In this document: in pieces, positions 17,286 to 44,261 of the stretch | Numbering within the stretch: position 1 is the first letter of the stretch | Layout: each line of letters starts with the position of its first letter | From: Tubulanus polymorphus | Lineage: Eukaryota; Animalia; Nemertea | Assembly (NCBI RefSeq): GCF_964204645.1 | Contig: NC_134033.1 | Span: forward strand, 4,488,231 to 4,552,230 | DNA: 64,000 nt | Reading direction: 5' to 3' | Position numbers and translations under genes: made by a program | The notes under the pieces: model-generated | Told to the model about the DNA's origin: nothing | Seen by the model: only the letters and a program-made list of their open reading frames with translations | Database searches by the model: none

Positions 17286-20200
17286 CTAGTTAAATTGTTC
17301 GAAAGTCGTAGTAAAAATAACGCCGACGCTTCTGATTTTCGTAGTAACTACAAATTCATCTTCTGAATTGGGACAATCTGATCGACCATCGCACACGTGT
17401 CTAATCGGTATACAGTAAGACGATGGACATTTCACTGTACCAGCTGGACATTCAAACTCGTTACAATTCAGTAAATGTTCGAGTCTTCTACAAACAGGAA
17501 AACCTGTCGGCATTCTTTCTAAAATACATCTTTCTCTCCTCGCGTAACAATGAGGAGAATCGAATGAACATCTTTGTTTATCCGATTCGGTACAGAGTGA
17601 AGTGAAATTGGTCGTGCAGTAGTTCTCTGTAGTGCAGTGAATTTGTGGTTTAATCGTTATGTTGGTTGTTACTATTTCATCTTCTTCGAGGTCCCCGCCA
17701 CAATCTACAACACCATCCCGATATAACAGAGAACTGATACATTCGCCATTAACGCACAAAAACCCGTTACATTCATCCGAAGAGCAGCCGATCTCATCGG
17801 ATTTATCTTGACAATCAAGCAGTCCATCACATCGTTTATATTTACCCACACATTGTCCGTCGTTACACTTAAATTGATCAGAGGAACATAAAATATGATA
17901 GCACGAGTTCTCATCCGAGCCATCGACGCAATCTCTCATAAAGTCACAGAAACCGCTAATCGATATAACCTGTCCATCGTTACAGCGGAACTGACTGTGT
18001 AAATTGATATCCGTACAATCGAGTTCATCTTCACCGTGTTGACAGTCGTTTCTGGTATCGCATACGCGATGGTCGCTGATACATCTTTGATCGTTACATT
18101 CAAACTGCCACGATTTACAACCGCTTATAGAAGCTAACTCTTCACCAGTTACATCATAGGAACATAGCACGGAATGCGCTTCACCTGTGACATTATCGAA
18201 GGCAGTCACTGACCATTTCACTGTTTGAAAATATGTTATCCAATCTCTAATTACAACTGGTTTTATTGCCATAATTCTTCCGCTTGTATGATTAGTCAGT
18301 ATAGCGCCATATTGATGCTCATAGTGGAAAACATTTATCAAATACTGGATTTCAATATCAGATGTTATTATACCTATGTCTCCACCGATTGTAAGACACA
18401 TTTCTCTAGCTGTTTGGATTGTTAAACTTTCAGTATGGAGCGTTTGCCAGGCTGTAAGTATCTGATAGCAATGCGCTTCTATAGGAATCCATCCTCTTAG
18501 ACACGTGGAGTTAAATCGTTCAAAGTTGTTCCGCTTTATGCCAGTTGTATCGTTTTGTGAAGATGCATTAAAATCGTTTCTTTCTGTTTCACAAATGAAT
18601 GTCGTGTGCGTCTCCTCGATTTGACACGGGAATCGAACCCAGTTCGCCGATCCTCGAGGATTATTCAGTATCATCGCCGTACACGGCATATTGACGTCAT
18701 TTATCGGTTGTTTTCTTAGCGGAGATATCAATCCTCGAATAACTTCTGGTATCGTTTCATTAACAGCAGCGGGTTCGAACCATTCTGTGTAACTGAACGG
18801 TTTTCCATCAGACCACGAGTAATAACCACTGGACTCCTTTAAAAACAAACACTTGTTTTACATACATTGGTGAAAACTTGTTTTGGATTATTTTCTGTGT
18901 TCTAAAAATTTTTGGAATAGCTTTTAATCCCTTATATATACACATGACAAGAACAAAAATCATAATCATCAAAGCTCAATTAGATGATTAATATTTGATA
19001 TGTATTTTACCTGCCATCTCAATCCAATCATCACAATAAGCGCCGCCTGTGAATATGCCTCATGAAGCAGTTTTGTAGCGAAAAGCTTTTTTACGGCCAT
19101 CATTTCACGTTGAGAGTTGATACTGAGAAGATGTCCACCATATTTCTGTTGACAGTAAATTTCAGCGTTCTCCCAATTCAGACGTTCATGTTTAATGTAT
19201 CTAATACACGAAACGCCTGAATCTATAAAATCTGATCGGCAGCCATTAATTCGATGTTTCAGTAAAGGCGATTGTTCTGAAGTGTATTGAATTCGAAATA
19301 TTGGCATGTACCTTGGCACCTCAAAATACAAGTCATACCCGAGTAGACTGTACAATACAAGTCCTGCTACTGCGTTATTTTCACATATTGTTGTTGTATG
19401 ACGGGTTTCTGTAAACGTGGAAAATAAATTGTTCGGATCATCAAATATTTTGATAATTTGAGTTAGTAATATTGATCCCCTTTTGCTGGTACCAACAGAT
19501 TCGGAGCATGATGTTTGTCCGATAAATTTAAACAGGAATCTGATGTAACGATTGATATTTTTGTCATTAGGATAAGAAAAACTAAAGAATATAGTTGAGG
19601 AGGTTGATAATCCAGGGAAGTTCGGTGACTGCACGAGTCCACAATCTACAGCGTTCCTTGAAATTCCACCCATAAACCCTGGAAGCACTTGCATTATCTT
19701 TAATTTCTGACATTTACGTCGTAATACAATCATTAGTGGTGACCTCCAGAATTCATATTTAGTGCGCAATAATTTCAAATGGTTTATTACGAGACTGGTA
19801 TTTAACACTTGACTATTGAGACTTGTCGTTGAACACGGATTCATAGCTGTACGATGACATCTGTCAATTTGATATTCGTGTTCTGATAATACATCAATGT
19901 TTTCTATCTGTAGGCGTCGATTTTCAGGTGTGATCACTAGACAGTATGACGTCATAGTGATCTGACGTTCTCCTTCCTGTAGAACATAACCGTCACAATC
20001 AGTAGGAGCAAACTTGAGGAAACCAGTTACTAGTATATCATCCATGTTGTAAGCGTATGCTACTACAGTAATCGGTCCACCTGATGTAATCAGGCTGACG
20101 ACAGATCGACCGTAGAATGAACCAGGACAATACGGACCATAGCGTCTAGCTGTAAAATTTCCACCATCAAATATATAAAAACCAGCTCGATCACAGTTTT

Positions 20201-21802
20201 CTGATAAGACTGCTAGTTTAATGAATTGCTCATAGATGTCGACCTTCCAGCTGAGTGCAAATCTACTGATACGATATTGTAACTTCCCTTTCGAATAGCG
20301 GGGGGACAGACTCTTATAGAACACTGAATGACTATTTCTAACCTACAATAGATGCAAACATAGGGTAAATCATCGGTATTCAATTAATGTTCATTGCTTC
20401 TTTCCCTTTGTCATTTAACCGAAAAATATTGCGACTTTGCCGTTAAAGGGTCAATGACTTATGTTCGATCAATTTCACAAATTACGATTTATATAATTTT
20501 TACACGTTATTTCATCGTCATCAGACAAATTCAAATCAATACAATAAATCTAAAATATATTACCATGCTATTTTAACTCACTTCTCCATCTTTCACTTTG
20601 ACGTCTGTTTCCTTCAATGATTCTATTTTGTATTCGATCGATGTTGAATTCTTAAACGAATTTCCGTAAAGATTCTCTGATAACAGTAAACACAATATCA
20701 CGAGAAATCCGTCAGATTTTACGCCTAACGACTGCAGGTAGTTTTCGCGGAGTAAAATATCAGTTCCGACAACCGTTAAACCTTCCAGTTTATAAACACC
20801 GATGACGTCACCGGAAGTTACGAGATCACGTGTCCAGTTGAAGACGACGTACTGCAGTATTTCAGCTGTGATAGACCAGCAGTATAAGCGTTTAGACCGA
20901 GTTATTACGTGCGGCCTATCACCAGGAATGAGCACTCCGGATTTGTTTTTACAGATCGGAATCGATGGATTCGAAATATTCCAATCTGATATTCTATACT
21001 TTTTAACGGATAGATTAGTTTTGAGAGGCAGCCGGGCTGAAAAAGTGATGATAGCTTTGTTAGTTTTAGTGTAAATAGAGATGGGCGGATGTCCGGTTTG
21101 TTCCCGTATATTCATTATAGGTTCACTTGTGTTCCATCCGTCATAAATTTGAACGGTCAGATTTAAACCTGGTTGTTCTAATCTTAAGTCTATTTTCTCA
21201 AAAGTCAGATTCATGCCAAAACCCTTTGATATCCCGGACCACTCGAGCTGCAGGAAACTACAAAATATTCCAAACATGTTGATAGCAAATTTATAACCAA
21301 TTTTAAAAGTTTGCAATTGTTTTATTCGGTTGGACGAACAGTGGTGAACAGTTTTTAGATGATTTTCCTCCAAACGATAAAATACATAAACTCGACATCC
21401 TTTCACAACATCATTTACATCACTCTTAAACATCAACGATAATGAATTACTGCGGTAAATATCTAATTGTTTTCCAGCACCGCACAGTAAGTTATCAGAA
21501 TCGCTGATGCGAAGATAGTTATCTCTACAGAATATAGACGGCTCGATGTCGTAGTAAAGATGGACGCGAAAGCTACCCGGTAAAGAGCTGTTGACGAACC
21601 AACGACATTCAACACCGCGCGTAAACGACGGATAATTCGGTGAAACGATGTAACCGGACGTAGAATCGAGTGAAAACCACGTATTGTTACACCGTGAACT
21701 GACAGTTACAGACGGTTGATCGGTAGAGATCCGATCAGTCGTCTGAACCGACGACAGTTTCATTAGTAGAATGAGTAATAACGTTAAGAGACTGCGCGTC
21801 AT
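17286..21802 (-). CDS. GRL101-like copy A: 3'-truncated but open, predicted secreted CUB-CTL-LDLa protein (~1367 aa) with no LRR or 7TM
   Basis: Exons 21802-20582 (signal peptide MTRSLLTLLLILL; CUB GYIVSPNYP...CRW), 20342-19011 (CUB-like IFDGG..YGPYC; CTL start) and 18836-17286 (CTL end WSDG, second CTL-like domain, ~6 LDLa). All introns are phase 0 GT-AG. Homology to copies B/C stops at ~17352 (SEDEF), followed by a short novel tail and a stop. Confidence 0.8.
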
Positions 21803-21839
21803 GTTGACATTCTCCTCGATCAGTTTAACTCTAACCACA

Positions 21840-23490
21840 TCGAATAGATTTTAATCCAATTAATGTTGGGCGTTTCCGAGTGAGAGAGAGAGAGCGGTAG
21901 AGAGGATGAGTCAGACTACATGGCGCTCACTAAAAATTAAATTCGATAATCTACGAAACCGAGTAATTATTAGCGAGATTAAAAATCTAATTCGATATTC
22001 AGTGCCTAGTCATTTCTATATTTATATATCTACATACAATTTCAAAACGTCCTCCGTCCAGTGGTAAACCGCCAACGCTACTGCGGCAAGCGAGGATTCA
22101 GCGATAATCCTCCAGGTGTTGCTAGTGGCACTGGGTTACCGCACTGCAAATTTATTTTTCACAAGAGACCCGCGCATGCGCAGCAATAAACACCACGACT
22201 ATTTTATGATCCCAATTTTGATCGTCGATAGAAAATGGCGGCTTTTTTGATAGTATTTATTCTTTCTAAGGGCATAAGATTCACACTAAGGTCCAAAGGG
22301 TCAGAGTTAGGTTAGGGTTCGAGTAGGCTTAGGTTTAGGATTAGCGTTTTAACGGGAAAAATGATAGGTAAAAATGTAATAAATGTAAGTATAGTTAAAA
22401 GTTGCTTAGCCTTCACTCGAGCTTGTGTGTTCGAATCCAATTTTCAAAATATCAATTTCCAATTTTCCAAGAGGATGAAACATACTGAAAAACTGATAAA
22501 GATAATAATTATCTAAGAAATGTTTTATTATGTTAATGTGATGATATCTTAACTGCCGAAAAGTGAACTATCTGCAATAAACGACTTTACACTTGCTCAT
22601 TCTTACCAGTAAGATCTGGGCGTATTGTAGATTCGTAATCATCTTTGAAATAAAGAACAACGCCAACACCCTTTACATCATTGGAGCGGCTTTTGAAAAT
22701 ACTATTGTAGCCAGGTAGTTTATAAAGATTATTGTTATGGGCATTATCATTACTCCAAGTCTCAGTAAGTGCTATGATAGAAAAATCGGATTTCATACAA
22801 TTGATGTAGTCAGTGAAAGAATCAAAATTTTTGTTGCAACTTCGAATATTAAAAGTGCAAGTTGAAAATTGACTTTTATCGAATTCAAAGTTATTTTCAT
22901 CATACTGACAATTAGAAAATCATTTCTGAAAATAATGCAGTTCAGCACCCTGGATTTTTATGCGCGCTTTAAAAAACTGACCACCGATTTTCATATCGCT
23001 CCCATGTCGCATTGTGGAAAATTTGAGATGCAAAGAACATCATTGAAAACTAGAGATTCATGCGGTTTAAATGTTATTACAACTGTCAAATTCCATCAAC
23101 GGACCAAGGAAACGTGATACAGGACAAAAGTACCCTAACAAAATGGCGGCTATAGTAACTGTACGTTTTTTGAACCTTGTTTTAACGAGTTCGGATATAA
23201 AGATTTATCAGTCATTACGAACCGTGAATTTCATCCCGAATCGGATAATTTCAATATATTCACACCGGATAAGCCCGGGTGACGATGGTTTGCAATCTCG
23301 GGGTACACGTTAAAAGAAGCCCCGTTTGGCAGGCGCTGTCTTTACTGTGGCTCATCGTAATATTTTCAAATATCGTATTATGTGTAATGTCTGATCGTGA
23401 TTTTTGTAAAGTGAAGCGGTTATCTTTTAAGCTGCACTGTAGAGGAAATATGTTATAATCATTCATCAATATTATCATCATTTTATTGGT
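21840..23490. repeat. Intergenic part of the tandem segmental duplication (paralog at ~38780-40433)
   Basis: Near-collinear sequence including (GA)n, a ttaggttagggtt tract, a LINE endonuclease fragment and the gene 3' flank. Confidence 0.92.
22587..22930 (-). mobile_element. Old LINE (CR1/L2 group) APE-endonuclease fragment, co-duplicated at ~39540-39860
   Basis: FNIRSCNKNF...FSIIALTETW...LPGYNSIFKSR...GVGVVLY motifs. Confidence 0.85.
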
Positions 23491-26703: not shown

Positions 26704-29700
26704 CTAAGTTCTAAAATAAATTCAGTATAATCTCACCAGTGTCTAATTATTGATAATTGAAAAAATTAATTCATAATGGGAAAAGAATATATTTTCTCAG
26801 AGGTAGAGCGAAGTCGGGTGGACGATGGTATACAATCACGGGTTAGGAGATAATCAGAAGCCTCGAGAAACCTCGAGGGACCGCCACAAAATTGCGCTTA
26901 GAAACTGGAAACTTCTTTATTGGCTCCGCGGTCGGCGCAGTCTTTACTGTGGGTCGACGAAATGTATTCATATTTTCAAATATCGTTTTATGTGTAATTT
27001 CTTATCGTAACTTTTGTATTAAGTAGAGTGATTATCCTTAACGCTGCACTATAGAGGAAATAAATAATCATTATTTATCATTATTATCATCATAGTATAG
27101 AGATTATCCTAAAATGATGTAGAGATTATCCTAAAAAGGAAATACCCGGTAGTGATTATCATATCAGTATCATCATCATTTTATTGGTTGTCGTTTTCTC
27201 CGTTTATTTCGAGCTCGTATGGATTTCATATCGATAGTTAGAATAGTGTAAAGAAGCGGATTCAGAGTTGAGTTTATCGGCAAGAAAAGAACGGCAAGCC
27301 AAGCGGCAACCTGGTTCGGTATCTCGACCAAAAATACGGCGCAAAACTGAACGATTATCAACGGTAGCCAGCAAAATAAATTACACAAATTGATGACTAA
27401 ACTGCGTCGAGCTAGAACGAGTTCTGTAGGATCGGCTCTACCCGAACCGGATCTGCTTCCGGATACATACTTGTACATCTGCGCGTACGACATCATTATC
27501 AGAGTGAGAATGATCGCGTTTAATACAGCGAATATAGCGAACGAATATTGCCAACCATTGACATTTATAGAAACTAAATTCATAGGTAAACAGATACCCG
27601 TACTACCGTAAAAATCATCACCGAAATACGACGACCGAGACAGCGGCAGAAAGGCGATTAAACTCAGAAATATCCAGCATAAACAAGATAGAATCGAAAT
27701 GATATTTGAGGATAAAACCGGGTTACCGGAAAATGGGTCGATTATATTCGAATATCTGAAACGCGTGAGGAGAAGGAGAAATGTTAAAGAGCCTTCGCAA
27801 GATATCGTCACCACAATTCCGGCGACTCCGCATAATGAACTACGAGTCCAAGTTTCAGAATTCAGAAAATAAACACCTTTATAAACGTGATCAGTTGCAG
27901 CGATCAGAAACAGATAAACAGACATCAGGAAATCACAAAGCGCGATATTAATGATGAGGATATCCGACGATTTATTTTGCGTTTCTGACGAAACTCGAAT
28001 CGACCTAAAACGAAATATAATAACAACAATATTGGAAACGAATGTAAAACAAGCGATGATCCAGATAACAGCTGTGAGGACAGTGTTCTCAATGAGGTCT
28101 GAACACGATGAGAATTGATCAGGATCCGGGAGACACCGGTCAATATTCGGTGCCATACAACAGAATTTATACGCGTCCGTAGCGAGAAAATATAAAGACG
28201 TCAGATTATCAAAGATATAATTTTCCGTAGAAATGATCCGAGAATTGTTGGTGAAATCTAGAACTCCCAGTGAACTCAACCCCGTAAACGCGTATCTGGA
28301 TATTGATCTGATTGCGTTACTGCTGATATTCAAATATTTCAGCGCTGGTAAACCTCGGAATACGTTACGAGTAAGAATCGATATAGAGAGTTCACGGAGA
28401 TCCATAACCGGAAGTGACGTCAAACCATCGAAGCTTCCATCGTTCAAATATCTCAGCGGATTTCCGGCGAGTAATAGTTGTTTCAAACTGTTTAAACCAG
28501 TGAATGTATCAGCGTGTAGTGATACTAGGCGATTATACGACAGATCTAATGTATTTAGATTGCGTAGATTAGAAAACGCGTTGGAGACAATGTCAGATAA
28601 ATGATTACGGGAAATATTGAGTAAGAAAAGGTACAGAAAAGAGGAAAATGTCGATTCATTAAATCTAACTCGGTTATTCGATAAAATCAAAACTCGAGTC
28701 GACGCGGCAAAAATTCCAGAAATATCCGATAATAAAGTATTTTCACAATCGATGAAACGACCTTGACATTTACAATAGTTAGGACACGTGACGTCGCAGT
28801 AAGCCTCGTCATCCGAGTTATGTTTACAATTAACGACGCCATCGCAAACTTCCGACTGAGGAATACATCGATGTTCGTCAGCGCATTTAAACATTCCCGG
28901 ACACGAAAACGTTTCGCAATTAAATTCATCTTCTGAATTGTGACAATCTGATCGACCATCGCACACGTGTCTAATCGGTATACAGTAAGACGATGGACAT
29001 TTCACTGTACCAGCTGGACATTCAAACTCATTACAATTCAGTAAATGTTCGAGTCTTCTACAAACAGGAAAACCTGTCGGCATTCTTTCTAAAATACATC
29101 TATCTCTTCTCGCGTAACAATGAGGAGAATCGAATGAACATCTCTGTTTATCCGATTCGGTACAGAGTGAAGTGAAATTGGTCGTGCAGTAGTTCTCTGT
29201 AGTGCAGTGAATTTGTGGTTTGATTGTTATATCGGTCGTTACTATTTCATCTTCTTCGAGGTCCCCGCCACAATCTACAACACCATCCCGATACAACAGA
29301 GAACTGATACATTCGCCATTTACGCACAAAAACCCGTTACATTCGTCCGAAGAGCAGTCGATCTCATCGGATTTATCTCGACAATCAACCAGTCCATCAC
29401 ATCGTTTATATTTACCCACACATTGTCCGTCGTTACACTTAAATTGATCAGAGGAACATGAAATATGATAGCACGAGTTCTCATCCGAGCCATCGACGCA
29501 ATCTCTCATAAAGTTACAGAAACCGCTAATCGATATAACGTGTCCATCGTTACAGCGGAACTGACTGTGTAAATTGATATCCGTACAATCGAGTTCATCT
29601 TCACCGTGTTGATAGTCGTTTCTGGTATCGCATACGCGATGGTCGCTGATACATCTTTGATCGTTACATTCAAACTGCCACGATTTACAACCGCTTATAG

Positions 29701-31221
29701 AAGCTAACTCTTCACCAGTTACATCATAGGAACACAGCACGGAATGAGCTTCATCTGTGACATTATCGAAGGCAGTCATTGACCATTTCACTGTTTGAAA
29801 ATATGTTATCCAATCTCTAATTACAACTGGTTTTATTGCCATAATTCTTCCGCTTGTATGATTAGTCAGTATAGCGCCATATTGATGCTCATAGTGGAAA
29901 ACATTTATCAAATGCTGAATTTCAATATCAGATGTTATTATACCTATGTCTCCGACGATTGTGAGACACATTTCTCTGGCTGTCTGGATTGTTAAACTTT
30001 CAGTATAAAGCGTTTTCCAGGCGGTAAGTATCTGATAGCAATGCGCTTCTATATGAATCCATCCTCTTTAGACACGTGGATTTAAATCGTTCAGAGTTGT
30101 TCCGCGTTATTTCAGTTGTTTCGTTTTGTGAAGATGCATTAAAATCGTTTCTTTCTGTTTCACAAATGAATGTCGTATGTGTCTCCTCGATTTGACACGG
30201 GAATCGAACCCAGTTCGCCGATCCTCGTGGATTATTCAATATCATCGCCGTACACGGCATATTGACGTCATTTATCGGTTGTTTTCTTAACGGAGATATC
30301 AATCCCCGAATAACTTCTGGTATCGTTTCATTAACAGCAGCAGGTTTAAACCATTCTGTGTAACTGAACGGTTTCCCATCAGACCACGAATAATAATCAC
30401 TGGACTCCTTTAAAACAAAAAACAAATATTTGTTATACAACATTGCAGAAAACTCTTTTTGGATTGTTTTCTGTGTTCTAATCATTTTTGGAATAACTTC
30501 ATATCTTTACACATGACAAGAACATAGATCATTATCATCAAAGCTCAATTAAATGATTAATATTTGATATGTATTTTACCTGCCATCTCAATCCAATCAT
30601 CACAATAAGCGCCGCCTGTGAATATGCCTCAGAAAGCAGTTTTGTAGCGAACAGCTTTTTCACGGCCATCATTTCACGTTGAGAGTTGATACTGAGAAAA
30701 TGTCCTCCATATTTCTGTTGACAGTAAATTTCAGCGTTCTCCCAATTCAGACGTTCACGTTTGATGTATCTAATACACGAAACGCCTGAATCTATAAAGT
30801 CTGATCGGCAGCCATTAATTCGGTGTTTCAGTAAAGGCGATTGTTCTAAAGTGTATTGAATTCGAAATATTGGCATGAACTGTGACAACTCAAAATACAA
30901 GTCATACCCGAGTAGACTGTACAATACAAGTCCTGCTACTGCGTTATTTTCACATATTGTTGTTGTATGACGGGTTTCTGTGAAGGTGGAAAATAAATTG
31001 TTCGGATCCTCGAATGTTTTGATAATTTGTGTTAGTACTATTGATCCCCTTGAGCGGGTACCAATTGATTCGGAGCATGATGTTTGTCCGATAAATTTAA
31101 ACAGGAATCTGATGTAATGATTTATATTTTTGTCAGTAGGATAAGAGAAAATAAAGAATACATGTTAAGGTGTTTGGGTCCGCTGGACCGTTAGAGGCTG
31201 GGCAACACAGCCAGTTCCACG

Positions 31222-32019
31222 AAATCAGTTTCCGTTCCGCTCATGTATAGACACTCTCAGGACTCGATATACAGCCGCTCGGACTGATGCTAAGGGCAGT
31301 CAATTTACTCCCGACGTGTCGTTTTATCAACATAACGCTATATCAATATTCGACAACCAAGGAATACCTGGTCGAATCGATACCGCCCGGCGGTCACACA
31401 AAAAATCGCTTCAGATCACATCAGATCGATGATTTTAAGAACCTCCTCAATCCAACAGATTGAAATATAGACGTAGTTGATACATACGCCGACAGATGAT
31501 CGGTGCGATTACCCTCGCAACACCAACGGACCCTGTTTTGACAGGACGGAAAGTACTCTCCACACGAGACGAGGAAAGCCCGTCCCACCTTTGCAAAAAT
31601 CTAACATCCATATCGGTTCTCACCACTACCCGCCACCGTAAGGCCTCGAATGTGTTGCTGATACACACGCCATCTATCTGATTAGGCTATCAGTACTATT
31701 TGCAATAACTTGCAATATAATACAGTCATACACCGACGCCGGTTTACTATATATAAAAGAAACAACACAATGTGTTCCTCACATTCTCAATATGAATTAC
31801 TCGTTTTTATTTCTACTGTGAATGATATAATTGTTACATTGCTACACCCTCGTGAACTGGCTGCATCACCCAGCCTCTAACAGTCTTACGGACCTAAATA
31901 CAACTTTTTCTACTGTGGATATTTAAACTACATACTAATGTGTACATATTGCTACACCCTCGTGGAACTGGCTGTGTTGCCCAGCCTCTAACGGTCCAGC
32001 GGACCCAAACACCTTAACA
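31222..32019 (+). repeat. 5' pseudo-LTR (~798 bp) of the PLE
   Basis: Matches 35695-36492; both copies give identical 73-aa and 61-aa ORFs in the track. Confidence 0.95.
31811..32012 (-). ncRNA. Tandem pair of a putative structured RNA motif in the pLTR (also 36284-36485; partial inverted copy 31161-31221)
   Basis: Two diverged ~90-105-nt units. Minus-strand hairpins are GGUC..GACU / GGUCC..GGACC, GGCUG-G(GUGA/GCAA)..-CAGCC and UGUA-GCAA-U(GUA/AUG). Linkers GUUAGA, AGUUC(C)ACGAGGG and CACAGUAGAA are conserved. Function unknown. Confidence 0.55.
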
Positions 32020-32389
32020 TGTCTTCTTTTTCCTACCCCCGGGTAGAAGCCGTTGTTTCAACGTGAAAATGGCCAACATAGACGGTGTGTCCAGCCACCC
32101 ACATCGGTAGCAGAATAGCAATATCGGTTCTATTTACAACCAACCATACGGTTAACTGGTCCCTGCTACGGCACGGAATTACTTGAGGAATACCAGTAGA
32201 TCGCTAACTCGAACGATCCCGTGTGGGTAACAGAACTTGCCGTGAACATCACGGTCCACACAATTTATACACAGAATCACCCCCTCATACACTGAAGGAG
32301 TGGAAAACCTGATAAATACACAGAAGAACGATCACGCAATTAGCAAATCACAATATATACACACAACACACCACCGGATGTGTACTACA

Positions 32390-32535
32390 CGACGTCAAGT
32401 GACTCAATGATTTTCTAGCCAATCAGCGCGTAACAGTGATAATTAGCCTGTGAAACAACAAACTCTCCGATTGGTGCCCTGCGGGAGCACCCAGAGAGTA
32501 TAAATAGTTAGCTATTCACTAACTGATCACTAACT
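32390..32535 (+). promoter_or_regulatory. Putative internal Pol II promoter of PLE ORF1
   Basis: gacgtca (CRE-like), tgactca (AP-1), agccaatc and gattgg (CCAAT in both orientations), TATAAATA at 32499-32506, and an Inr-like tcact ~28 nt downstream, before the ATG at 32567. Confidence 0.55.
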
Positions 32536-32566
32536 GCACTACATTGACTCGCTCTGTATCAGTATT

Positions 32567-33193
32567 ATGGCTCTTGACGACATGTTCACAGAAACCGAAA
32601 TCGACGAGATGATGAGAGACCTGGACTCAACCAACGCTACCGCGACGCCGCCATCGGAACCGCCGCACCCGTCTACCGAGACCAACTCAACAAGACCCGA
32701 ACACTATTCGGCTCTTAAGATGTATGAAGACTCGAGACGGAGGGTACTGCAACACCAACATCACGGCTCGCTACTTAGAATCGGTTTGGTCGCTGGCGAA
32801 GTGCCGAAACACTTCAAAATCCACTTACCCATCAGACTGATGGAAGCAGACAGGAATCCAGACGTTACAAAAGACTGGATTCGCAGACTCCACCAGACGA
32901 GTCTAGATCTGATGAAGATTTCGGCCCGCCACCACGAAGCGATGGCCGACCAAAACCGCCTCAAAGCAGAGGCGATCGCAGCTGAGATCTTAAAGTTACC
33001 AGGCGCCTCAGAAGCCCAGCTCAAAGAAGCAGAAGCTAGCGCGGTCACACCGAAATCAGCTCCGGCTCAACCGACACCAATGGTGAACGAAGAGGACCCT
33101 ACGGCGGCACCGAAGAAACGTCACCCGAGTAGGGGACGTCACCAATCCGGCGGCCGCTCTAACTACCGGGGCAAGCGACCGAGAAGAGAATAA
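32567..33193 (+). CDS. PLE ORF1, 208 aa: helical core, basic RG-rich C-terminus (putative nucleic-acid binding)
   Basis: Intact ORF inside the element. H..LL......VPK.F.I..P....W...L...SL.LM resembles, from memory, the N-terminal region of Neptune-type PLE polyproteins. Ends PKKRHPSRGRHQSGGRSNYRGKRPRRE. Confidence 0.75.
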   Translation: MALDDMFTETEIDEMMRDLDSTNATATPPSEPPHPSTETNSTRPEHYSALKMYEDSRRRVLQHQHHGSLLRIGLVAGEVPKHFKIHLPIRLMEADRNPDVTKDWIRRLHQTSLDLMKISARHHEAMADQNRLKAEAIAAEILKLPGASEAQLKEAEASAVTPKSAPAQPTPMVNEEDPTAAPKKRHPSRGRHQSGGRSNYRGKRPRRE

Positions 33194-33720
33194 TCCATTT
33201 TCTCTCTCACAACAACACACACTCTCTCAACAGTCCTTATCAGGACTACCCCTATGTCTAAGACAGACTTAGTCCATCTCAGTCCGACGCAAACCCATTC
33301 AAATGTTTGCAATAGATTTCTATCTGAACAGTCGTTCCCTTGAACCGCACTCCGACGTTAACCGTCCGCGTGTCTAAAAACAAGGCTCATATACATGTAT
33401 TCATAGTTTAATGGGAATTCATTTTTTATTTCTATTTATTTATTCTTCCATCAGAACGAATACACACGAGCCGCCATCGTGCATTATACATTATATGTAT
33501 ACAAAACACGCCCGCATACAGAGAACAGTGTTAATCACACGACTAGGTCGATTATCCACCTATTGATTACACTCATAGAGCCACTAACAGCTAAACCCTT
33601 TTGCTCTACAGCTGTTTAATACCGATCTACTCGGCTAATCTAGCAGTGTATCTAACCAGACGACACACGCGGAACTCTGCTCACAGTATCACGCACTCAC
33701 ATTCCAATCTTACTCCCCTT

Positions 33721-35590
33721 ATGGGTAGGAGGAAAAACAACCAGTGGAAAAACCACTCAACTGGGTCACGCATCAGCCGAGGTAAACCCTCCGCTACAAC
33801 TGCCTCCCAGCACAACAGATTTGTGGTCAACCTATCAGACCACGTGGTTAGCAAAACCACCATTAATGCATTAAGCAAGGGTCTGAAATTCGTACCCAAT
33901 AATGCACCGACACAGAAGGACGAACTTCTCACGGCCGCCGAAGCTTTCTTCCGCCGCCTTAGGTTGAAATATATATTTTTTAACCGTGAGAAAAACTCAC
34001 TGCACCCCTTCAAAGGGATAAGCCAATTCAATCCGCTTACATCAGGCGATCGCCGGCTCGAACGTTATATTGAACTAACGCGTACAGAGCTCAAAAAAAC
34101 TCAATCTCACGCAAAAATTCAAATCCAATTTATCGAGAAACGAGATGAAAGCGATCAACGAACTAAATCGGAATAAAGATCTCATTGTAAAACCCTGTGA
34201 CAAAGGGGGAGCCATAGCTATCATGAGCAAAGACTCTTACAAAAAAGAAGCTCTGAGACAGCTAAATGACACCAACAGCTACCGGTCAATCGCTCCACCC
34301 GACACTACTTTAGTCACAAGTGAAATAAAAAGAATCATAGACGATATGAAAAACAACCAAGAAATAGACCATGTTACATGGCTATATCTAACACCGGGAT
34401 CTGATATCAAAATCCCCGAATTCTACCTTCTACCGAAAATTCACAAGGTCAACAACCCGGGGAGACCGATCCTAAGCGGCAACAATGGCCCCACGGAAAA
34501 GATATCCAAATATCTGGACTATTTTCTGAGACCAATCGCGAGTCGAGTATCAACATACATCCAAGATACCAATGACTTTCTCAACAAAATCAATTCCCTC
34601 CCTCCCCTCCGCAAAGATGCGATATTGGTGACAATGGATGTCAAAAGTCTATACACCAACATCCCTCACGGAGAAGCCATCAGTAGCATCTTAAGAAGTC
34701 TAGATGACTTCCCGCTACAATACGCAGTTCGCCGTCCAGACAAAAGACGCTTCGTTCAATTCCTGAATCTCATACTGAAGAGAAATGAATTCTCTTTCGG
34801 GAAAAACGAACACCGCCTTCAAATAGAGGGTTGCGCCATGGGTTCAACAGTCAGCCCGAGTCTAGCGATCATATTCATGCATTATCTCGAGACTAAATGT
34901 CTCCGCTCGGCACCGAACAATACTATACCCATGTTATATTGGAGATATATAGATGATATATTCTCAATCTGGACCCACGGTGAAGATAAACTACTCGAAT
35001 TTTTCGAACATATGAACCAATCACACCGTACCATCCAATACGAACTGACACAATCAAGGGAGAAGGTACCCTTCCTAGACGTTGAAGTCTACAAAGGGAA
35101 AGATTTTGAGAACTCAGGTAAACTCTCAACAAGGGTGTACACAAAACCCACGGACGCACACTCGCTCCTACACAAAGAATCGTGTCACCCGCCTCACTGC
35201 AGCAACAACATTGCATACGCACAGGCTCTCAGATTTAAGAAAATCTGCTCGGACGAAAGCGAATACCGCTCACAATGTAAAAAACTACAGGGTTACCTCC
35301 GGGCCCGAGGCTATAGTGCTCGCGAAATCCGCGCTCAAATCTACAAAGCGGACCAACGATATCGTACGGATCTCTTACACACGCGCACAAAAAAGCGCTC
35401 ATTTGATTCAATCTCACTGATCACCAAATACCATCCGAACACGGATAATATCCGTCAGTCGCTTACAAAACACTGGAAGATAATCCAATCGAACGCGACT
35501 CTGAGAATAATATTCAAGGAACCTCCTAGAATACTATTTACACGCGGCAAAAATCTTTGAGACATTCTAGTCCGCGCGAGATGTGTGTAA
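33721..35590 (+). pseudogene. PLE reverse transcriptase ORF with a +1 frameshift (A7 run ~34093-34099) and an in-frame TGA at 35558-35560
   Basis: VVNLS...LSKGLKFVP, KPCDKGG, FYLLPKIHK..PGRPI, MDVKSLYTNIP, GCAMGS..SP, WRYIDDIF, PFLDV, VYTKPTD. Ends RGKNL*DILVRARCV*. No GIY-YIG ORF follows. Confidence 0.92.
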
Positions 35591-35694
35591 GGCACACCAC
35601 CATCTCAACCTCAATACCGTAATAATAGTCGGTTTTATGTGCTTCATACGAATCCTTCAATCAAGATTTATGCAAAATAAGGTGAAAACCGTTT

Positions 35695-36492
35695 AAATCA
35701 GTTTCCGTTCCGCTCATGTATAGACACTCTCAGGACTCGATATACAGCCGCTCGGACTGATGCTAAGGGCAGTCAATTTACTCCCGACGTGTCGTTTTAT
35801 CAACATAACGCTATATCAATATTCGACAACCAAGGAATACCTGGTCGAATCGATACCGCCCGGCGGTCACACAAAAAATCGCTTCAGATCACATCAGATC
35901 GATGATTTTAAGAACCTCCTCAATCCAACAGATTGAAATATAGACGTAGTTGATACATACGCCGACAGATGATCGGTGCGATTACCCTCGCAACACCAAC
36001 GGACCCTGTTTTGACAGGACGGAAAGTACTCTCCACACGAGACGAGGAAAGCCCGTCCCACCTTTGCAAAAATCTAACATCCATATCGGTTCTCACCACT
36101 ACCCGCCACCGTAAGGCCTCGAATGTGTTGCTGATACACACGCCATCTATCTGATTAGGCTATCAGTACTATTTGCAATAACTTGCAATATAATACAGTC
36201 ATACACCGACGCCGGTTTACTATATATAAAAGAAACAACACAATGTGTTCCTCACATTCTCAATATGAATTACTCGTTTTTATTTCTACTGTGAATGATA
36301 TAATTGTTACATTGCTACACCCTCGTGAACTGGCTGCATCACCCAGCCTCTAACAGTCTTACGGACCTAAATACAACTTTTTCTACTGTGGATATTTAAA
36401 CTACATACTAATGTGTACATATTGCTACACCCTCGTGGAACTGGCTGTGTTGCCCAGCCTCTAACGGTCCAGCGGACCCAAACACCTTAACA
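35695..36492 (+). repeat. 3' pseudo-LTR of the PLE
   Basis: Direct repeat of 31222-32019. Confidence 0.95.
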
Positions 36493-39400
36493 GTTGATGA
36501 GGTTGATAATCCAGGGAAGTTCGGTGACAGCACGAGTCCACAATCTACAGCGTTCTTTGTGTTTCCACCAATAAAACCTGGATTCAGTTGACTTTGTTTT
36601 AATTTCTGACATTTACGTCGTAATACAATCATTAGTGGTGTCCTCCAGAATTCATATTTAGTGAGTAACAATTTCACATGGTTTAATACGAGACTGGTAT
36701 TTAACACGTGACTAGTGAGACTTATCACTGAACAGGGATTCGTAGCTCCACGATAACATCTGTTAATTTGATATTCGTGTTCTGATAATACATCTATGTT
36801 TTCTATCGGTAGACGTCGATTTGCAGGTGTAATCACAAGACAGTATGACGTCATAGTGATTTGACGTTCTCCTTCCTGTAGAACATACCCGTCACAGTCA
36901 GTAGGGACAAACTTGAGTCCACCAGTTACTAGGTTATCACCCACGTTGTAAGCGTATGCTACTACAGTAACCGGTCCACCTGATGTAATCAGGCTGACGA
37001 CAGATCGACCGTAGTTTCCCAAACCACCAGCAGGACAATACGGACCATAGCGTCTAGCTGTGAAATTACTACCATCAAATATATAAAAACCAGCTCTCTC
37101 ACATTTCTCTGATAAAACTGTTAGTTTTAATTCCTGAGTTCCTAATCTATACTCATAGATGTCGATTTTCGAGCTGAGTGCAAATCTACTGATACGATAT
37201 TGTAACTTCTGTTTCGGATAACGGGGGAACAGACTGTGATAGTACACTGAATGAGCATTTCGAACCTACAATAGATGCAAACATAGAGTAAATCATCGGT
37301 TTTCAATTATCATTCATGTCTTATTTTTCGTTTGCCCCTTAACCGGAAAATATTGCGACTCTGTCGTTAAAGGGTCAATGGCTTATGTTCGTTCAGGTTT
37401 GATTTCAAAAAATTACGATTCATGTGAATTTTACACATTATTTCATCGTTGTCAAACAATTTCAAAACAATATAAAAAATTTAAAATATATTTTCATGCT
37501 GTTTCAACTCACTTTTTCATCTTCCATTTTGACGTCTGTTTCCTTCAATGATTCTATTTTGTATTCGATCGATGTTAAATTCCTCAACGATTTTCCGAAA
37601 AGATTCTCTGATAACAGTAAACACAATATCACGAGAAATCCGTCAGATTTTACGCCTAACGATTCCAGGTAGTTTTCGCCGAGTAAAATATCAGTTCCGA
37701 CAACCGTTAAACCTTCCAGTTTATAAACACCGATGACGTCACCGGAAGTGACGAGATCACGTGACCAGTTGAAGACGACGTACTGCAGTATTTCAGCTGT
37801 GATAGACCAGCAGTATAAGCGTTTAGACTGAGTTATTACGTGCGGCCTATCACCAGGAATGAGCACTCCGGATTTGTTTTTACAGATCGGAATCGATGGT
37901 TTCGAAATATTCCAATCTGATATTCTATACAGTTTTACAAATAGATTAGTTTTGAGATTTAATCCGGCCTGTTTCATTGAAAAAGTGACGACAGCTCTGT
38001 TACTTTTCGTGTAAATAGAGATGGGCGGATGTCCGGTTTGTTCCCGTATATTCGTTATAGGTTCACTTGTGTTCCATCCGTCATAAATTTGAACGGTCAA
38101 ATCTAAACCTGGTTGTTCTAAACTTAAGTTTATTTTCTCAAAAGTCAGATTCATGCCGAAACCCTCTGGTAACCCGGACCACTCGAGCTGCAGGAAATGA
38201 CATATTCTATTCATGCCGATGGCAAATTTGTAACCAGTTTCAAAAGTTTGTGATTGTTTTATCCTATTTGAGGGACAGTCGTGAACAGTTTTTAGATGAT
38301 TTTCCTCCAAACGATAAAAAACATAAACTCGACTTCCTTTCACAACATCATTTACATCACTCTTAAACATCAACGTTAATGAATAACTGCGGTAAATATC
38401 TAATTGTTTTCCATCACCGCACAGTAAGTTATCAGAATCGCTGATGTGAAGATAGTTATCTCTACAGAATATCGAAGGCTCGATGTCGTAGTAAACTTGG
38501 ACGCGAAAGGTACCCGGTAAAGAACTGTTGACGAACCAACGACATTCAACACCGCGCGTAAACGACGGATAATTCGGTGAAACGATGTAACCGGACGTAG
38601 AATCGAGTGAAAACCACGTGTTGTTACACCGTGAACTGACAGTTACAGACGGTTGATCGGTAGAGATCCGATCAGTCGTCTGAACCGACGACAATTTCAT
38701 TAGCAGAATGAGTAATAACGTTAAGAGACTGCGCGTCATGTTGACATTCTCCTCGATCAGTTTAACTCTAAACACAGCGAATAGATTTTAATCCAATTAA
38801 TGTTGGGCGTCTCCGTGTGAGTGAGAGAGAGAGAGCGGTAGAGAGGATGAGTCAGACTACACGGCGCTCACTAAAAATTAAATTCGATAATCTACGAAAC
38901 CGAGTAATGATTAACGAGATTAAAAATCTCATTCGATATTCAGTGCATAGGCTGTTCTATATTTATATATTTATACATACAATTTAGAAACGTCCTCCGT
39001 CCAGTGGTAAACCGACAACGCTACTGCGGCAAGCCAGGATTCAGAGATAATCCTCCAGGTGTCGCTAGTGGCACTGGGTTACCGCACTGCAAAGTTATTT
39101 TTCACAAGAGACCAGCGCATGCACAGTAATAAACACCACGACTATCAGACGATCCCTATTTTGATTGTCGATAGAAAATGGCGGCTTTTTTGATAGTTGT
39201 TATTCCATCTATAGAGAGTACGGAGCATAAGGGCATGAGGTTTATACTAGGGTCCAAAGGGTCAGAGTTAGGTTAGGGTTCGAGTAGGCTTAGGTTTAGT
39301 ATTAGTGTTTTAACGGGAAAAATAATAGGTAAAGAATGTAAGTATAGTTAAAAGTTGCTAAGCCGGCACTCGAGCTTGTATGTTCGAATCCCATTTTTAG

Positions 39401-40420
39401 AATATCAACTTCCAATTTTCCAAGAGGACTAAACATACTGAAAAACTGATAAAGATAATTATTTAAGAACTATTTTATTATATTAATGTGATGATATCTT
39501 AACTGCTGAAAAGTGAACTATCTGCAATTAACGACTTTGCAGTTGCTCATTCTTACCGGAAATATCTGGCCGTATTATAGATGATCGTAATCATCTTAGA
39601 AATAAAGGGCAATGCCACCGCCCTTTACATCATTCGAGTGGCTTTTGAAAATACTATTGTAGTCAGGAGATTATTGTTATGGGCATTATCATTACTCCAA
39701 GTCTCAGTAAGTTCTATGATAGAAAAATCGGATTTTATACAATTGATGTAGTCAGTGAAAGAATCAAAATTTTTGTTGCAACTTCGAATGTTAAAGGTGC
39801 AATTTGAAAATTGACTTTTATCGAATTCAAAGTTATTTTCATCATACTGACAATCAGAAAATCATTTCTGAAAATAATGCAGTTAAGCACCCTGGATTTT
39901 TATGCGCGCTTTAAACTGAACACAGATTTTCATATCGCTCCCATGTCCCATTACAGTGGCAAATTTGAGAGATGTTTTTTGCATCCTTGAAAACTATAGA
40001 TTCATACGGTTTAAATGTTGTTAAAACTGTCAACTTCCATCAATGGACCAAAGAAACGTGATACAGGACAAAAGTGCCCTAACAAAATGGCGGCTATAGT
40101 AATTGTACGTTTTTTTAACCTTGTTATAACGAGTTCGGATATAAAGATTTATCAGTCATTACGAACCGAGAATTTCATCCCAAATCGGATAATTTCAATA
40201 TATTCACACCGGATAAGCCGGGTGACGATGGTCTGCAATCTCGGGGTACGCGATAAAAGAAGTCCTGTTTGGTAGGCGCTGTCTGAACTGTGGTTCATCC
40301 TGATATTTTGAAATATCGTATTATGTGTTATATCTGAACGTGATTTTTGTTAAGTGAAGCGGTTATCTTTTAAGCTACATTGTAGAGGAAATAAGTTATA
40401 ATCATTCATCAATACTATCA

Positions 40421-43400
40421 TCATTTTATTGGTTGTCGTTTTCTGCGTTTATTTCGAGCTCGTATGGATTTCATATCGATAGTTAGAATAGTGTAAAGAA
40501 GCGGGTTCAGAGTTGAGTTTATCGGCAAGAAAAGAACGGCCAGCCAAGCGGCAACCTGGTTCGGTATCTCGACCGAAAGAACGGCGCAAAACTGAACGAT
40601 TATCAACGGTAACCAGCAAAATAAATTACACAAATTGATGACTAAACTGCGTCGAGCTAGAACGAGTTCTGTAGGATCGGCTCTACCCGAACCGGACCTG
40701 CTTCCGGATACATACTTGTACATCTGCGCGTACGACATCATTATCAGAGTGAGAATGATCGCGTTTAATACAGCGAATATAGCGAACGAATATTGCCAAC
40801 CATTGACATTTATAGATATTAAATTCATAGGTAAACAGATACCCGTACTACCATAAAAATTATCACCGAAATACGACGACCGAGACAGCGGCAGAAAGGC
40901 GATTAAACTCAGAAATATCCAGCATAAACAAGATAGAATCGAAATGATATTTGAGGATAAAACCGGGTTACCGGAAAATGGGTCGATTATATTCGAATAT
41001 CTGAAACGCGTGAGGAGAAGGAGAAATGTTAAAGAGCCTTCGCAAGATATCGTCACCACAATTCCGGCGACACCGCATAATGAACTACGAGTCCAAATTT
41101 CAGAATTCAGAAAATAAACACCTTTATAAACGTGATCAGTTGCAGCGATCAGAAACAGATAAACAGACATCAGCAAATCACAAAGCGCGATATAAATGAT
41201 GAGGATATCCGACGATCTATTTTGCGTTTCTGACGAAACTCGAATCGACCTAAAACGAAATAAGATAACGGTAATATTGGAAGCGCAAGTAAAACAAGCG
41301 ATGATCCAGATAACAGCTGTGAGGACAGTGTTCTCAATGAGGTCTGAACACGATGAGAATCGGTCAGGATCCGGGAGACACCGGTCAATATTCGGCGCCA
41401 TACAACAGAATTTATACGCTTCCGAAGCGAGAAAATATAAAGACGTCAGATTATCGAAGATATTATTTTCCGTAGTAATGATCCGAGAATTGTTAGTGAA
41501 ATCTAGAACTCCCAGTGACCTCAACCCAGTAAACGCGTATCTGGATATTGATTCGATTACGTTACTGCTGATATTCAAATATTTCAGCGCTGGTAAACCT
41601 CGGAATACGTTACGAGTAAGAATCGATATAGAGAGTTCACGGAGATCCATAACCGGAAGTGACGTCAAACCATTGAAGCTTCCATCGTTCAAATATCTCA
41701 GCGGATTTCCGGCGAGTAAAAGTTGTTTCAAACTGTTTAAACCAGTGAATGTATCAGCGTGTAGTGATACTAGGCGATTATACGACAGATCTAATGTATT
41801 TAGATTGCGTAGATTAGAAAACGCGTTGGAGACAATGTCAGATAAATCATTACGGGAAATATTGAGTAAGAAAAGGTACAGAAAAGAGGAAAATGTCGAT
41901 TCATTGAATCTAACTCGGTTATTCGATAAAATCAAAATTCGAGTCGACGCGGCAAAAATTCGAGAAATATCCGATAAAAAAGTATTTTCACAATCGATGA
42001 AACGACCTTGACATTTACAATAGTTAGGACACGTGACGTCGCAGTAAGCCTCGTCATCCGAGTTATGTTTACAATTCACGACGCCATCGCAAACTTCCGA
42101 CTGAGGAATACATCGATGTTCGTCACCCCATTTAAACATTCCCGGACACGAAAACGTTTCGCAATTGAATTCATCTTCTGAATTGGGACAATCTGATCGA
42201 CCATCGCACACGTGTCTAATCGGTATACAGTAAGACGATGGACATTTCACTATACCAGCTGGACATTCAAACTCATTACAATTCAGTAAATGTTCGAGTC
42301 TTCTACAAACAGGAAAACCTGTCGGCATTCTTTCTAAAATACATCTATCTCTTCTCGCGTAACAATGAGGAGAATCGAATGAACATCTTTGTTTATCCGA
42401 TTCTGTACACAGTGAAGTGAAATTGGTCGTGCAGTAGTTCTCTGTAGTGCAGTGAATTTGTGGTTTGATTGTTACATTGGTCGTTACTATTTCGTCTTCT
42501 TCGAGGTCACCGCCACAATCTACAACACCATCTCGATACAACAGAGAACTGATACATTCGCCATTTACGCACAATAACCCGTTACATTCGTCCGAAGAGC
42601 AGCCGATCTCATCGGATTTATCTCGACCATCAACCAGTCCATCGCATCGTTTATATTTACCCACACATTGTCCGTCGTTACACTTAAATTGATCAGAGGA
42701 ACATGAAATATGATAGCACGAGTTCTCATCCGAGCCATCGATGCAATCTCTCATAAAGTCACAGAAACTGCTAATCGATATAACCTGTCCATCGTCACAG
42801 CGGAACTGACTGTGTAAATTGATATCCGTACAATTGAGTTCATCTTCACCGTGTTGACAGTCGTTTCTGGTATCACATGCGCGATGGTCGCTGATACATC
42901 TTTGATCGTTACATTCAAACTGCCACGATTTACAACCGCTTATAGAAGCTAACTCTTCACCAGTTACATTATAGGTACATAACACGGCATGAGCTTCATC
43001 TGTGACATTATCGAAGGCAGTCACTGACCATTTCACTGTTTGAAAATATGTTATCCAATCTCTAATTACAACTGGTTTTATTACCACAATTCTTCCGCTT
43101 GTATGATTAGTCAGTATAGCGCAGCGCCGTATTGATGCTGATAGTCGAAAACATTTATCAAATACTGAATTTCAATACTAGATGTTATTATACCTATGTC
43201 TCCACCGATTGTAAGACACATTTCTCTAGCTTTGTGGATTGTTAAACTTTCAGTATGGAGTGTTTGCCAGTCTGTAAGTATCTGATAGCAATGCGCTTCT
43301 ATACGAATCCACCCACTTAAACAAGTGGAGTTAAATCGTTCAAAGCTTTTCCGCTTTATTCCTGTTGTATCGTTTTGTGAAGATGCATTAAAATCGATTC

Positions 43401-44261
43401 TTTCTGTTTCACAAATGAATGTCGTGTGCGTCTCCTCGATTTGACACGGGAATCGAACCCAGTTCGCCGATCCTCGTGGATTATTCAGCATCATCGCCGT
43501 ACACGGCATATTGACGTCATTTATCGGTTGTTTTCTTAGCGGAGATATCAATCCTCGAATAACTTCTGGTATCGTTTCATTAACAGCAGCAGGTTTAAAC
43601 CATTCTGTGTAACTGAACGGTTTCCCATCAGACCACGAGTAATAACTAATGGACTCCTTTAATTAAAAAACAAATAAACAAACACTTGTTAAACATTGCT
43701 GAAAACTCATTTTTCATTTTTTCGGTGCCATTTTTGGAACAATTTAATATTTTTCAACATGGCAAGAACATTGATCATAATCATCAAAGCTCAATTAGAT
43801 GATTAATATTTGATATGTATTTTACCTGCCATCTCAATCCAATCATCACAATAAGCCTCGCCTGTGAATATGCCTCATGAAGCAGTTTTGTAGCGAACAG
43901 CTTTTTCACGGCCATCATTTCTTGTTCAGAGTTGATACTGAGAAGATGTCCTCCATATTTCTGTTGACAGTAAATTTCAGCGTTCTCCCAATTCAGACGT
44001 TCACGTTTAATGTATCTGATACACGAGACGCCTGAATCTAGGAAATCTGTTCGGCAGCCATTAATTCGATTTTTCAGTAAAGGCGATTGTTCTAAAGTGT
44101 ATTGAATTCGAAATATTGGCATGAAATCTGACAGCTCGAAATACAAGTCATACCCGAGTAGACTGTACAATACAAGTCCTGCTACTGCGTTATTTTCACA
44201 TATTTTTGTTATATGACGGGTTTCTGTAAACGTGGAAAATAAATTGTTCGGATCATCAAAT
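40421..44261 (-). pseudogene. GRL101-like copy C: 5'-truncated (part of exon 2 + exon 3: CTL-LDLa-LRR-7TM)
   Basis: Exon remnant 44261-43826 and exon 43656-40421. A 5-bp duplication (agcgc) at ~43118-43127 shifts the frame. Lost cysteines (VDGRDK, FKWGDE). Confidence 0.9.

Follow-up and report, generated by a model that had tools for sequence, protein, structure and literature searches.

A tandem hairpin module at the 3' end of a hammerhead-less Penelope-like element from Tubulanus polymorphus, a candidate signal for recognition and initiation by the reverse transcriptase

The last ~210 nt of a Penelope-like element (PLE) from the ribbon worm Tubulanus polymorphus are made of two units, lying on the same strand as the reverse transcriptase (RT), whose hairpins and linkers form a motif that is real, conserved, structured, and not in Rfam. 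This module is regarded here, with moderate confidence, as a cis-acting 3' element for RT recognition and initiation in a PLE family devoid of hammerheads; its position, its conservation and covariation, its occurrence in RT-less elements, and the cDNA start points are observed, whereas its action on the plus strand and its binding by the RT are what we infer. The element lies in a 64,000-nt stretch of DNA that was analysed as a whole (the window), and all positions given below without further indication refer to it.

The element and its insertion site

The element, with its RT on the + strand, is inserted at 31163-36492 in a duplicated host GPCR locus. These limits are exact since one paralogue of the locus is uninterrupted at the corresponding site (~19593-19600). 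The minus-strand ORF of 931 aa at 27176-29971 codes for a host LDLa/LRR/7TM receptor and is distinct from the element RT. The host gene, an intronless LDLa/LRR/7TM (relaxin-receptor-like) ORF with CUB-domain exons upstream, is part of a segmental triplication (17352-23490, ~27151/28922-40433, and 40394-44261), and the retroelement is present in the middle copy only. In contigs from two public runs, position 31160 is joined to 36492 by a single T, a join that corresponds either to an insertion-free allele or else to a paralogous empty site; were it an allele, the insertion would be polymorphic and recent. As to the surroundings of other copies, L087 (G000:C5:13005600-13012400; ~720-1120, + strand) adjoins a long trinucleotide array and others adjoin (AAT)n or (ATT)n, which suggests a microsatellite insertion bias, as reported for Naiad and Neptune elements.

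The element body (32020-35694, + strand) contains the 5' UTR, a coiled-coil-like ORF1 (32567-33193), and the RT ORFs (33601-34176 and 34145-35560). It is enclosed by two pLTRs forming a direct repeat of 798 nt, 4473 nt apart and 100% identical, namely the upstream one (31222-32019, + strand), which is the 3' part of the preceding tandem unit, and the downstream one (35695-36492, + strand), which holds a second copy of unit 1 (36284-36378) and of unit 2 (36381-36492) of the module and whose last nucleotide is the end of the insertion. At the other extremity, joined to the left target flank, 31163-31222 (- strand) repeats, in inverted orientation, the terminal 60 nt of the element (tail, helix B, and helix A) and is 100% complementary to 36433-36492; the additional CA at 31161-31162 agrees with read-through into the following unit. 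This partial-tandem organization, together with the inverted 5'-truncated copy, is that by which a PLE is recognized. The pLTR start, AAATCAG (31222 and 35695), is found again at the junctions of independent copies and of solo-pLTR arrays with an 800-804-nt period, where ...CCTTAACA is joined to AAATCAG; it would be either a transcription start or an RNA-processing site. Besides, AUCAGUU at 35697-35703 is able to pair with GACUGAU at 35757-35763, and no ribozyme model matches at the pLTR start.

The RT ORF gives an RVT_1 match, the motifs DKG and NLRDILVRA being readable in its translation, and an RT fragment annotated in T. polymorphus is 98% identical to it. The RT frame of the window copy is interrupted; this copy also has an in-frame stop at 35558-35560, which is missing from three other copies (L087, L088, and L089), in which the frame ends in ...DILVRARCV and, in two of them, is a continuous ORF of 643-652 aa. 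The closest relatives of this RT measure 625-650 aa, with 42-53% identity, and are devoid of PF01541. It also aligns, with 36-41% identity over ~91% of the query, with ~900-aa proteins combining RVT_1 and GIY-YIG (PF01541), one of which bears the name GIY-YIG endonuclease. No Pfam match to GIY-YIG was obtained at E<=1 in the RT ORF, in ORF1, or in the downstream 110-aa ORF, nor in any downstream frame. Judging from the translated sequence, the Penelope-type RT identifies the host of the motif as a PLE. The element family is young (copies 98-100% identical) and inserts inside chromosomes despite having no detectable GIY-YIG. Finally, a 3.34-kb derivative (window 32524-33660 compared with L088 and L089) is missing ~1.1 kb including ORF1, and is arrayed in tandem on contig C4, with at least four units.

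Layout of the tandem module

The two units, each of ~110 nt, are located at 31811-32019 and repeated at 36284-36492, and each is built of hairpin C, GUGAAC, helix A, CUCUAAC, helix B, and a short tail. More precisely, unit 1 (31811-31905, + strand) comprises a spacer, the hairpin C region (31835-31846), CGTGAAC, helix A (31859-31863/31871-31875, with its loop at 31864-31870), TCTAAC (31876-31881), helix B (31882-31886/31890-31894), and the tail TAAATACAAC. Unit 2 (31908-32019, + strand) comprises a spacer, hairpin C (31940-31944/31953-31957), CGTGGAAC, helix A (31970-31974/31982-31986, with its loop at 31975-31981), TCTAAC (31987-31992), helix B (31993-31997/32001-32005), and the tail CAAACACCTTAACA, which is the 3' terminus of the unit. 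A first-pass annotation of the window had proposed two diverged tandem units at this place, and self-comparison confirms them: the 62-nt cores (31838-31898 and 31948-32009) are 84% identical with a spacing of 110-111 nt, their spacers being diverged, and the pair recurs with 100% identity at 36311-36371 and 36421-36482 in the second pLTR.

Helix A is GGCTG/CAGCC in both units (31859-31875 and 31970-31986), and helix B is GGUCC/GGACC in unit 2 and AGUCU/GGACC in unit 1. Both helices being self-complementary, they can form on either strand, while hairpin C of unit 2 reads GUGUA/UACAC on the plus strand. The fold initially proposed, made of three minus-strand hairpins, is indeed antisense to the RT, which is on the + strand; its third hairpin (UGUA-GCAA-UGUA/UAUG) stands as specific to the minus strand through G-U pairs, whereas helices A and B form on both strands.

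Genomic relatives and covariation

In the genome assembly (268 Mb, 77 contigs), a DNA search retrieved ~40 copies with 76-100% identity, in the form of 4.47-kb units, 3.34-kb units with ORF1 deleted, and pLTR-only arrays with an 800-804-nt period. Two pLTR-only tandem arrays (G000:C1:15643490-15645317 and G000:C6:18373340-18374359) show short variable junction filler and are retrozyme-like, with no hammerhead. A covariance-model search of the same genome, in two rounds, gave ~113 matches, most of them without RT, and these cover at least five lineages with cores diverged by 20-40%. The order of the parts is common to all lineages, that is, hairpin C, (C)GUGAAC, helix A, CUCUAAC, helix B, a tail of 14-18 nt, and then unrelated flank; the tail is CAAACACCUUAACA in the window family and AAUUUUCUUAUAAUCA or AACAACCUUAUAAUCA in others, with CUUA..A.CA in common. 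The dimer of unit 1 and unit 2 is also found at two places in one diverged lineage, the units being 151 nt apart in L077 and 210 nt apart in L097 (a stretch that overlaps L081). One other lineage has a single unit, which indicates that the duplication is not obligatory. No RT was found within 6 kb upstream of the five diverged copies examined. One diverged lineage is a ~780-nt solo pLTR that shares two more patches with the window pLTR, and the others share the module alone.

The first-pass annotation had suggested collecting homologous pLTRs from related genomes; the covariance model detected no module in the contigs of the four closest RT relatives, and a metagenome scan for GCCCAGCCTCTAACGGNCC returned 7 matches, 0 of which were confirmed by the covariance model and which are regarded as chance matches, so that neither source provided the module from another species. 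As a separate observation, one of these four relatives, whose RT is 53% identical (L090:3364-4112; GCA_004566115.1), carries two ~190-nt tandem hairpin units in its 3' region, an architecture parallel to that of the window module without sequence similarity, and these hairpins keep their pairing through a U-A to C-G change, as read by eye in the printed sequence.

Covariation was evaluated on a model-fitted alignment of 70 distinct sequences, all of them paralogous copies of one genome. Paired cells amount to 80.9%, compared to 75.5% in shuffles, and 11 of the 14 base pairs change on both sides. The covariation score of 0.221 (0.134 in shuffles) exceeds that of all 500 shuffles (0/500 reached it), although, module homologues being found only within this genome, all the covariation comes from paralogues, many of which are probably dead. 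The signal collapses when the partners are slid by one to three columns. In helix B, GGUCC/GGACC is compensated to GGCCC/GGGCC (third pair, U-A to C-G); helix A varies from GGCUG/CAGCC to GGUUG/CAACC and AACUG/CAGUU, and also occurs as GACUG/CGGUC; hairpin C is found as GUGUA/UACAC, GUAUA/UAUAC, CGUG/UACG, UGUG/CACG, and CCAU/AUGG. The linkers are more conserved than the stems; among those proposed from the start as conserved, CACAGUAGAA is kept between the two units of the window family only and is absent from the diverged lineages. The minimum free energy is not better than that of shuffles on either strand (z -0.1 to -1.3), and the module consists of several short hairpins and does not make a compact fold of unusual stability. 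Two additional pairings were considered and rejected, namely a pseudoknot pairing the UGUU of the helix-A loop with the AACA of the tail, which neither unit 1 nor the diverged lineages conserve, and an outer closing stem GUGU/ACAC in the fold of unit 2, which is not conserved either.

End points of reverse transcription

In every lineage, the element finishes with the ~95 nt of the module, whose hairpins lie about 15-20 bases from the 3' end, and the copies end 14-18 nt past helix B. The flanks of 23 distinct copies of the window family diverge directly after CCAAACACC(TTAACA), and those of the diverged lineages directly after ...CTTATAATCA, ~17 nt past helix B. Among the partial genomic matches, 12 keep the 3' part only and 1 keeps the 5' part only, a bias that is predicted by copying from the 3' end. 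Copies truncated at the 5' end keep the module, as do solo-pLTR relatives devoid of RT; the carriers without RT are the 800-804-nt solo-pLTR arrays, the solo-pLTR lineage that has diverged, and several short lineages in which the 6 kb upstream contain no RT.

At the right junction of the window copy, the element ends ...CCTTAACA and is followed by GTTGA. The left junction reads, from the target inwards, ...AAAGAATA, CA, and TGTTAAGG..., and CA together with TGTTAAGG is the reverse complement of ...CCUUAACAUG, reaching two bases into the next tandem unit. In addition, AAAGAATA, at the end of the target, can pair at 7 of its 8 positions with UCUUCUUU, which comes after TTAACA in the tandem RNA. 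The inverted copy, the CA, and this microhomology show that a second cDNA was primed just past the module, from the other target strand, on an uncut read-through RNA. The inverted 60-nt copy is thus an abortive cDNA primed from the opposite target strand, which came to a halt once the tail, helix B, and helix A had been copied.

In the mechanism proposed here, the telomerase-related RT of the element would bind the module on plus-strand element RNA, and target-primed cDNA synthesis would begin in the tail just downstream (...CUUAACA); initiation would be internal, on read-through or tandem transcripts, and the duplication would provide two docking or initiation units. Initiation in the tail would explain why every genomic copy ends there, and the presence of the module in RT-less pLTR-only derivatives would explain their mobilization. 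The recurrent AAATCAG start and the solo-pLTR arrays fit transcripts beginning at the pLTR start, with the RT initiating at the first module met.

Search for a known ribozyme

The first-pass annotation had started from the premise that PLE pLTRs carry hammerheads, which holds for canonical elements and has to be qualified since Naiad and Chlamys elements are devoid of them (PMC8557442). Its statement that the pLTR lacks a hammerhead core is correct: CUGANGA is absent from the pLTR on both strands, and its two occurrences in the ORFs are without a proper helix II/GAAA arrangement. A cmscan with all 4227 Rfam 15 families gave no match at gathering score over the whole window, and no ribozyme family appeared at E<=10 on 31000-32800 and 31100-36600 (including RF00163, RF00008, and RF02275-7), nor at E<=1 on 16 related loci or 4 contigs of RT relatives. 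Similarly, the Rfam 15 covariance models gave no match for the HDV-like, twister, twister-sister, pistol, hatchet, hairpin, VS, and hovlinc classes. Genome-wide, RF00163 gave no match, but it gave none in control genomes either, which makes this particular result uninformative. HDV-like folds can escape Rfam. By eye, neither the hammerhead, nor the HDV-like ribozyme (on both strands), nor the hairpin ribozyme could be fitted, and no P1 partner of the linker was seen on either strand; a 12-nt identity, GGCUGGGCAACA, to the genomic HDV ribozyme was set aside as chance, given that the pairing partners differ and that RF00094 does not match. The misfit to known classes that had been claimed is therefore borne out by both Rfam 15 and the fits by eye. 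From the two functions put forward at that stage, RT recognition or priming fits the evidence, whereas self-cleavage has gained no positive support.

Strand of action and alternative explanations

The strand was approached through wobble pairs, plus-only cells being G-U on the plus strand and minus-only cells A-C on the plus strand. There are 29 minus-only versus 6 plus-only cells in helix A, 23 versus 16 in helix B, and 12 versus 29 in hairpin C. The signals hence conflict, A and B leaning to the minus strand and C to the plus strand, and the minus-strand preference initially advanced is not established, all the more so as part of its G-U evidence is CpG decay: among the differences said to keep pairing through G-U, those involving the A residues at 31882 and 31865 are more simply explained as minority CpG-to-CpA differences, most copies having G there. 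A minus-strand function would take place either at the 5' end of the first-strand cDNA, as single-stranded DNA hairpins with GNRA-like loops guiding template switching, second-strand priming, or the formation of inverted 5' copies, or in an antisense RNA. We consider it rather unlikely, although several observations speak for it. The states GACUG/CAGCC, GGCUG/CAACC, and GGCCG/GGACC, which are A-C on plus and G-U (G-T) on minus, look like wobble intermediates; hairpin C of unit 1 pairs on the minus strand only; and inverted terminal copies show that this cDNA end joins in an unusual way. Besides, the helix-A loop on the minus strand contains GNRA in 25 of 30 distinct variants (GCAA, GUGA, GUAA, GCGA, and GAAA), with G and A held while N takes three values (C, U, and A) and R is A or G, a fit for which a plus-strand reading gives no explanation. 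This part of the GNRA-capped middle hairpin first described therefore stands; nevertheless, the loop is of 7 nt, its proposed closing G-C pair is broken in several lineages (G-U, A-C, G-G, or G-A), and in one lineage the tetraloop disappears when another register, GGGC/GCCC, is adopted. The minus-leaning states of A and B are lineage-fixed, but the counts reflect few independent events, and CpG decay yields the same G-to-A changes without selection. On the plus side, hairpin C of the diverged lineages has G-U at three positions that would be A-C on minus, and helix B shows plus-only wobbles in L073, L072, and unit 1 of the window family. Nothing speaks for antisense transcription; none of the runs recorded as RNA contains the element stretch, and the one possible RNA run gave no coverage of it.

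The idea that each unit is a self-cleaving RNA of an undescribed class, processing tandem transcripts in place of tandem minimal hammerheads, appears very improbable. In its most explicit version, which is just as doubtful, catalysis would reside in a core made by the linkers CUCUAAC and GUGAAC, with a tertiary contact provided by the GNRA loop, the hammerhead having been replaced in one PLE lineage and in its pLTR-only (retrozyme-like) derivatives. Such a ribozyme would be in line with the position near the pLTR 3' end, which is the hammerhead site of canonical elements (PMC8557442), with the tandem arrangement, like that of minimal hammerheads, with invariant single-stranded linkers between covarying helices, and with the lack of a hammerhead core in both the element and the solo-pLTR arrays. 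However, besides the absence of any Rfam ribozyme match at E<=10 and the failed fits by eye, the three hairpins follow one another and show neither a conserved junction or pseudoknot nor a thermodynamic signal, some lineages have a single unit, one cDNA template corresponds to an RNA left uncut across the unit boundary, and the junctions of the solo-pLTR arrays are made of variable filler instead of a precise cleavage-ligation site. In addition, hammerhead cleavage is dispensable for Poseidon insertion in vitro (PMC11167929) and Naiads thrive without hammerheads (PMC8557442), so that no replacement is required. The palindromic helices could also be sites in double-stranded DNA (half-sites of a dimeric protein or a promoter element), or else reflect recent descent without structural role, which we hold to be decidedly unlikely. 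Both helices read alike on the two strands, the wobble counts favour neither strand consistently, the short stems have no more than ordinary stability, and most copies are young and near-identical, all of which would agree with such an origin. Yet stems change with pairing kept in the lineages that are 20-40% diverged, and these compensated changes are unpredicted by simple descent and weakly predicted by a fixed protein half-site; linkers are more conserved than stems; and the module keeps a constant distance from the cDNA start, which links it to reverse transcription.

Comparison with known systems

Recognition of their own RNA by PLEs is almost unknown, the sole biochemical study having mapped a required segment in one lizard element without defining a structure, and no paper describing a conserved 3' structure in PLEs was found in the literature. 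The compact, covariation-backed module reported here is tied to the cDNA start and is common to an RT-coding family and several RT-less families, in a lineage with neither hammerhead nor detectable endonuclease. It thereby offers a concrete RNA for the study of RT binding, internal initiation, and self-cleavage, and it indicates that retrozyme-like pLTR-only arrays can exist without a hammerhead.

Within the PLEs, canonical elements carry hammerheads near the pLTR 3' end, whereas Naiad and Chlamys do not (Craig et al. 2021, PMC8557442). With the latter two, the window element shares proliferation without canonical hammerheads, insertion at microsatellite or AT-rich sites, and an inverted 5'-truncated copy. 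However, Naiad possesses an N-terminal GIY-YIG and DKA, while the window element combines DKG with a coiled-coil ORF1 located upstream, and no GIY-YIG could be detected at either of its ends; going by these sequence features, it is not of Naiad type. Minimal type I hammerheads are known from PLEs and animal retrozymes (Cervera & de la Pena 2014, PMC4209133; Li et al. 2026 bioRxiv 10.64898/2026.07.22.740005). Like them, the window module is near the pLTR 3' end, in tandem, and present in pLTR-only non-autonomous tandem arrays; it differs from them in lacking a CUGANGA...GAAA core on both strands, a three-way junction, and an Rfam match.

Another parallel is provided by non-LTR elements of the stringent type. 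In the eel UnaL2/UnaSINE1 pair, a conserved structured 3' end is common to the RT-coding element and its RT-less partner. The same holds for the 3' stem-loops of other stringent-type elements and their partner SINEs, as in the 3' UTR of Bombyx R2 (PMC11194090), and, as in the window family, the conserved 3' end is retained by 5'-truncated copies. In contrast to these systems, the RT lineage of the window element is telomerase-like, its module has three hairpins and a duplicated unit, and it has no terminal simple repeat or poly(A) of its own.

The closest comparison is with the Poseidon element of Anolis carolinensis, in which initiation is internal and occurs at two adjacent stem-loop sites beside a required protein-binding RNA segment (Frangieh et al. 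2024, PMC11167929), and for which extension from both target strands was observed in vitro, hammerhead activity being dispensable (PMC11167929). The two elements belong to the same class and share the tandem/pLTR organization, a fixed internal cDNA start just downstream of an RNA segment (required in Poseidon), and two adjacent start or docking sites; extension from both strands moreover fits the inverted terminal copy in the window. They differ in that there is no sequence similarity between them, and that the Poseidon site is inside the ORF start, beside a functional hammerhead, with sites 30-40 nt apart, whereas the window module, a putative RT-binding site, is in the 3' UTR, without hammerhead, and has units 110 nt apart.
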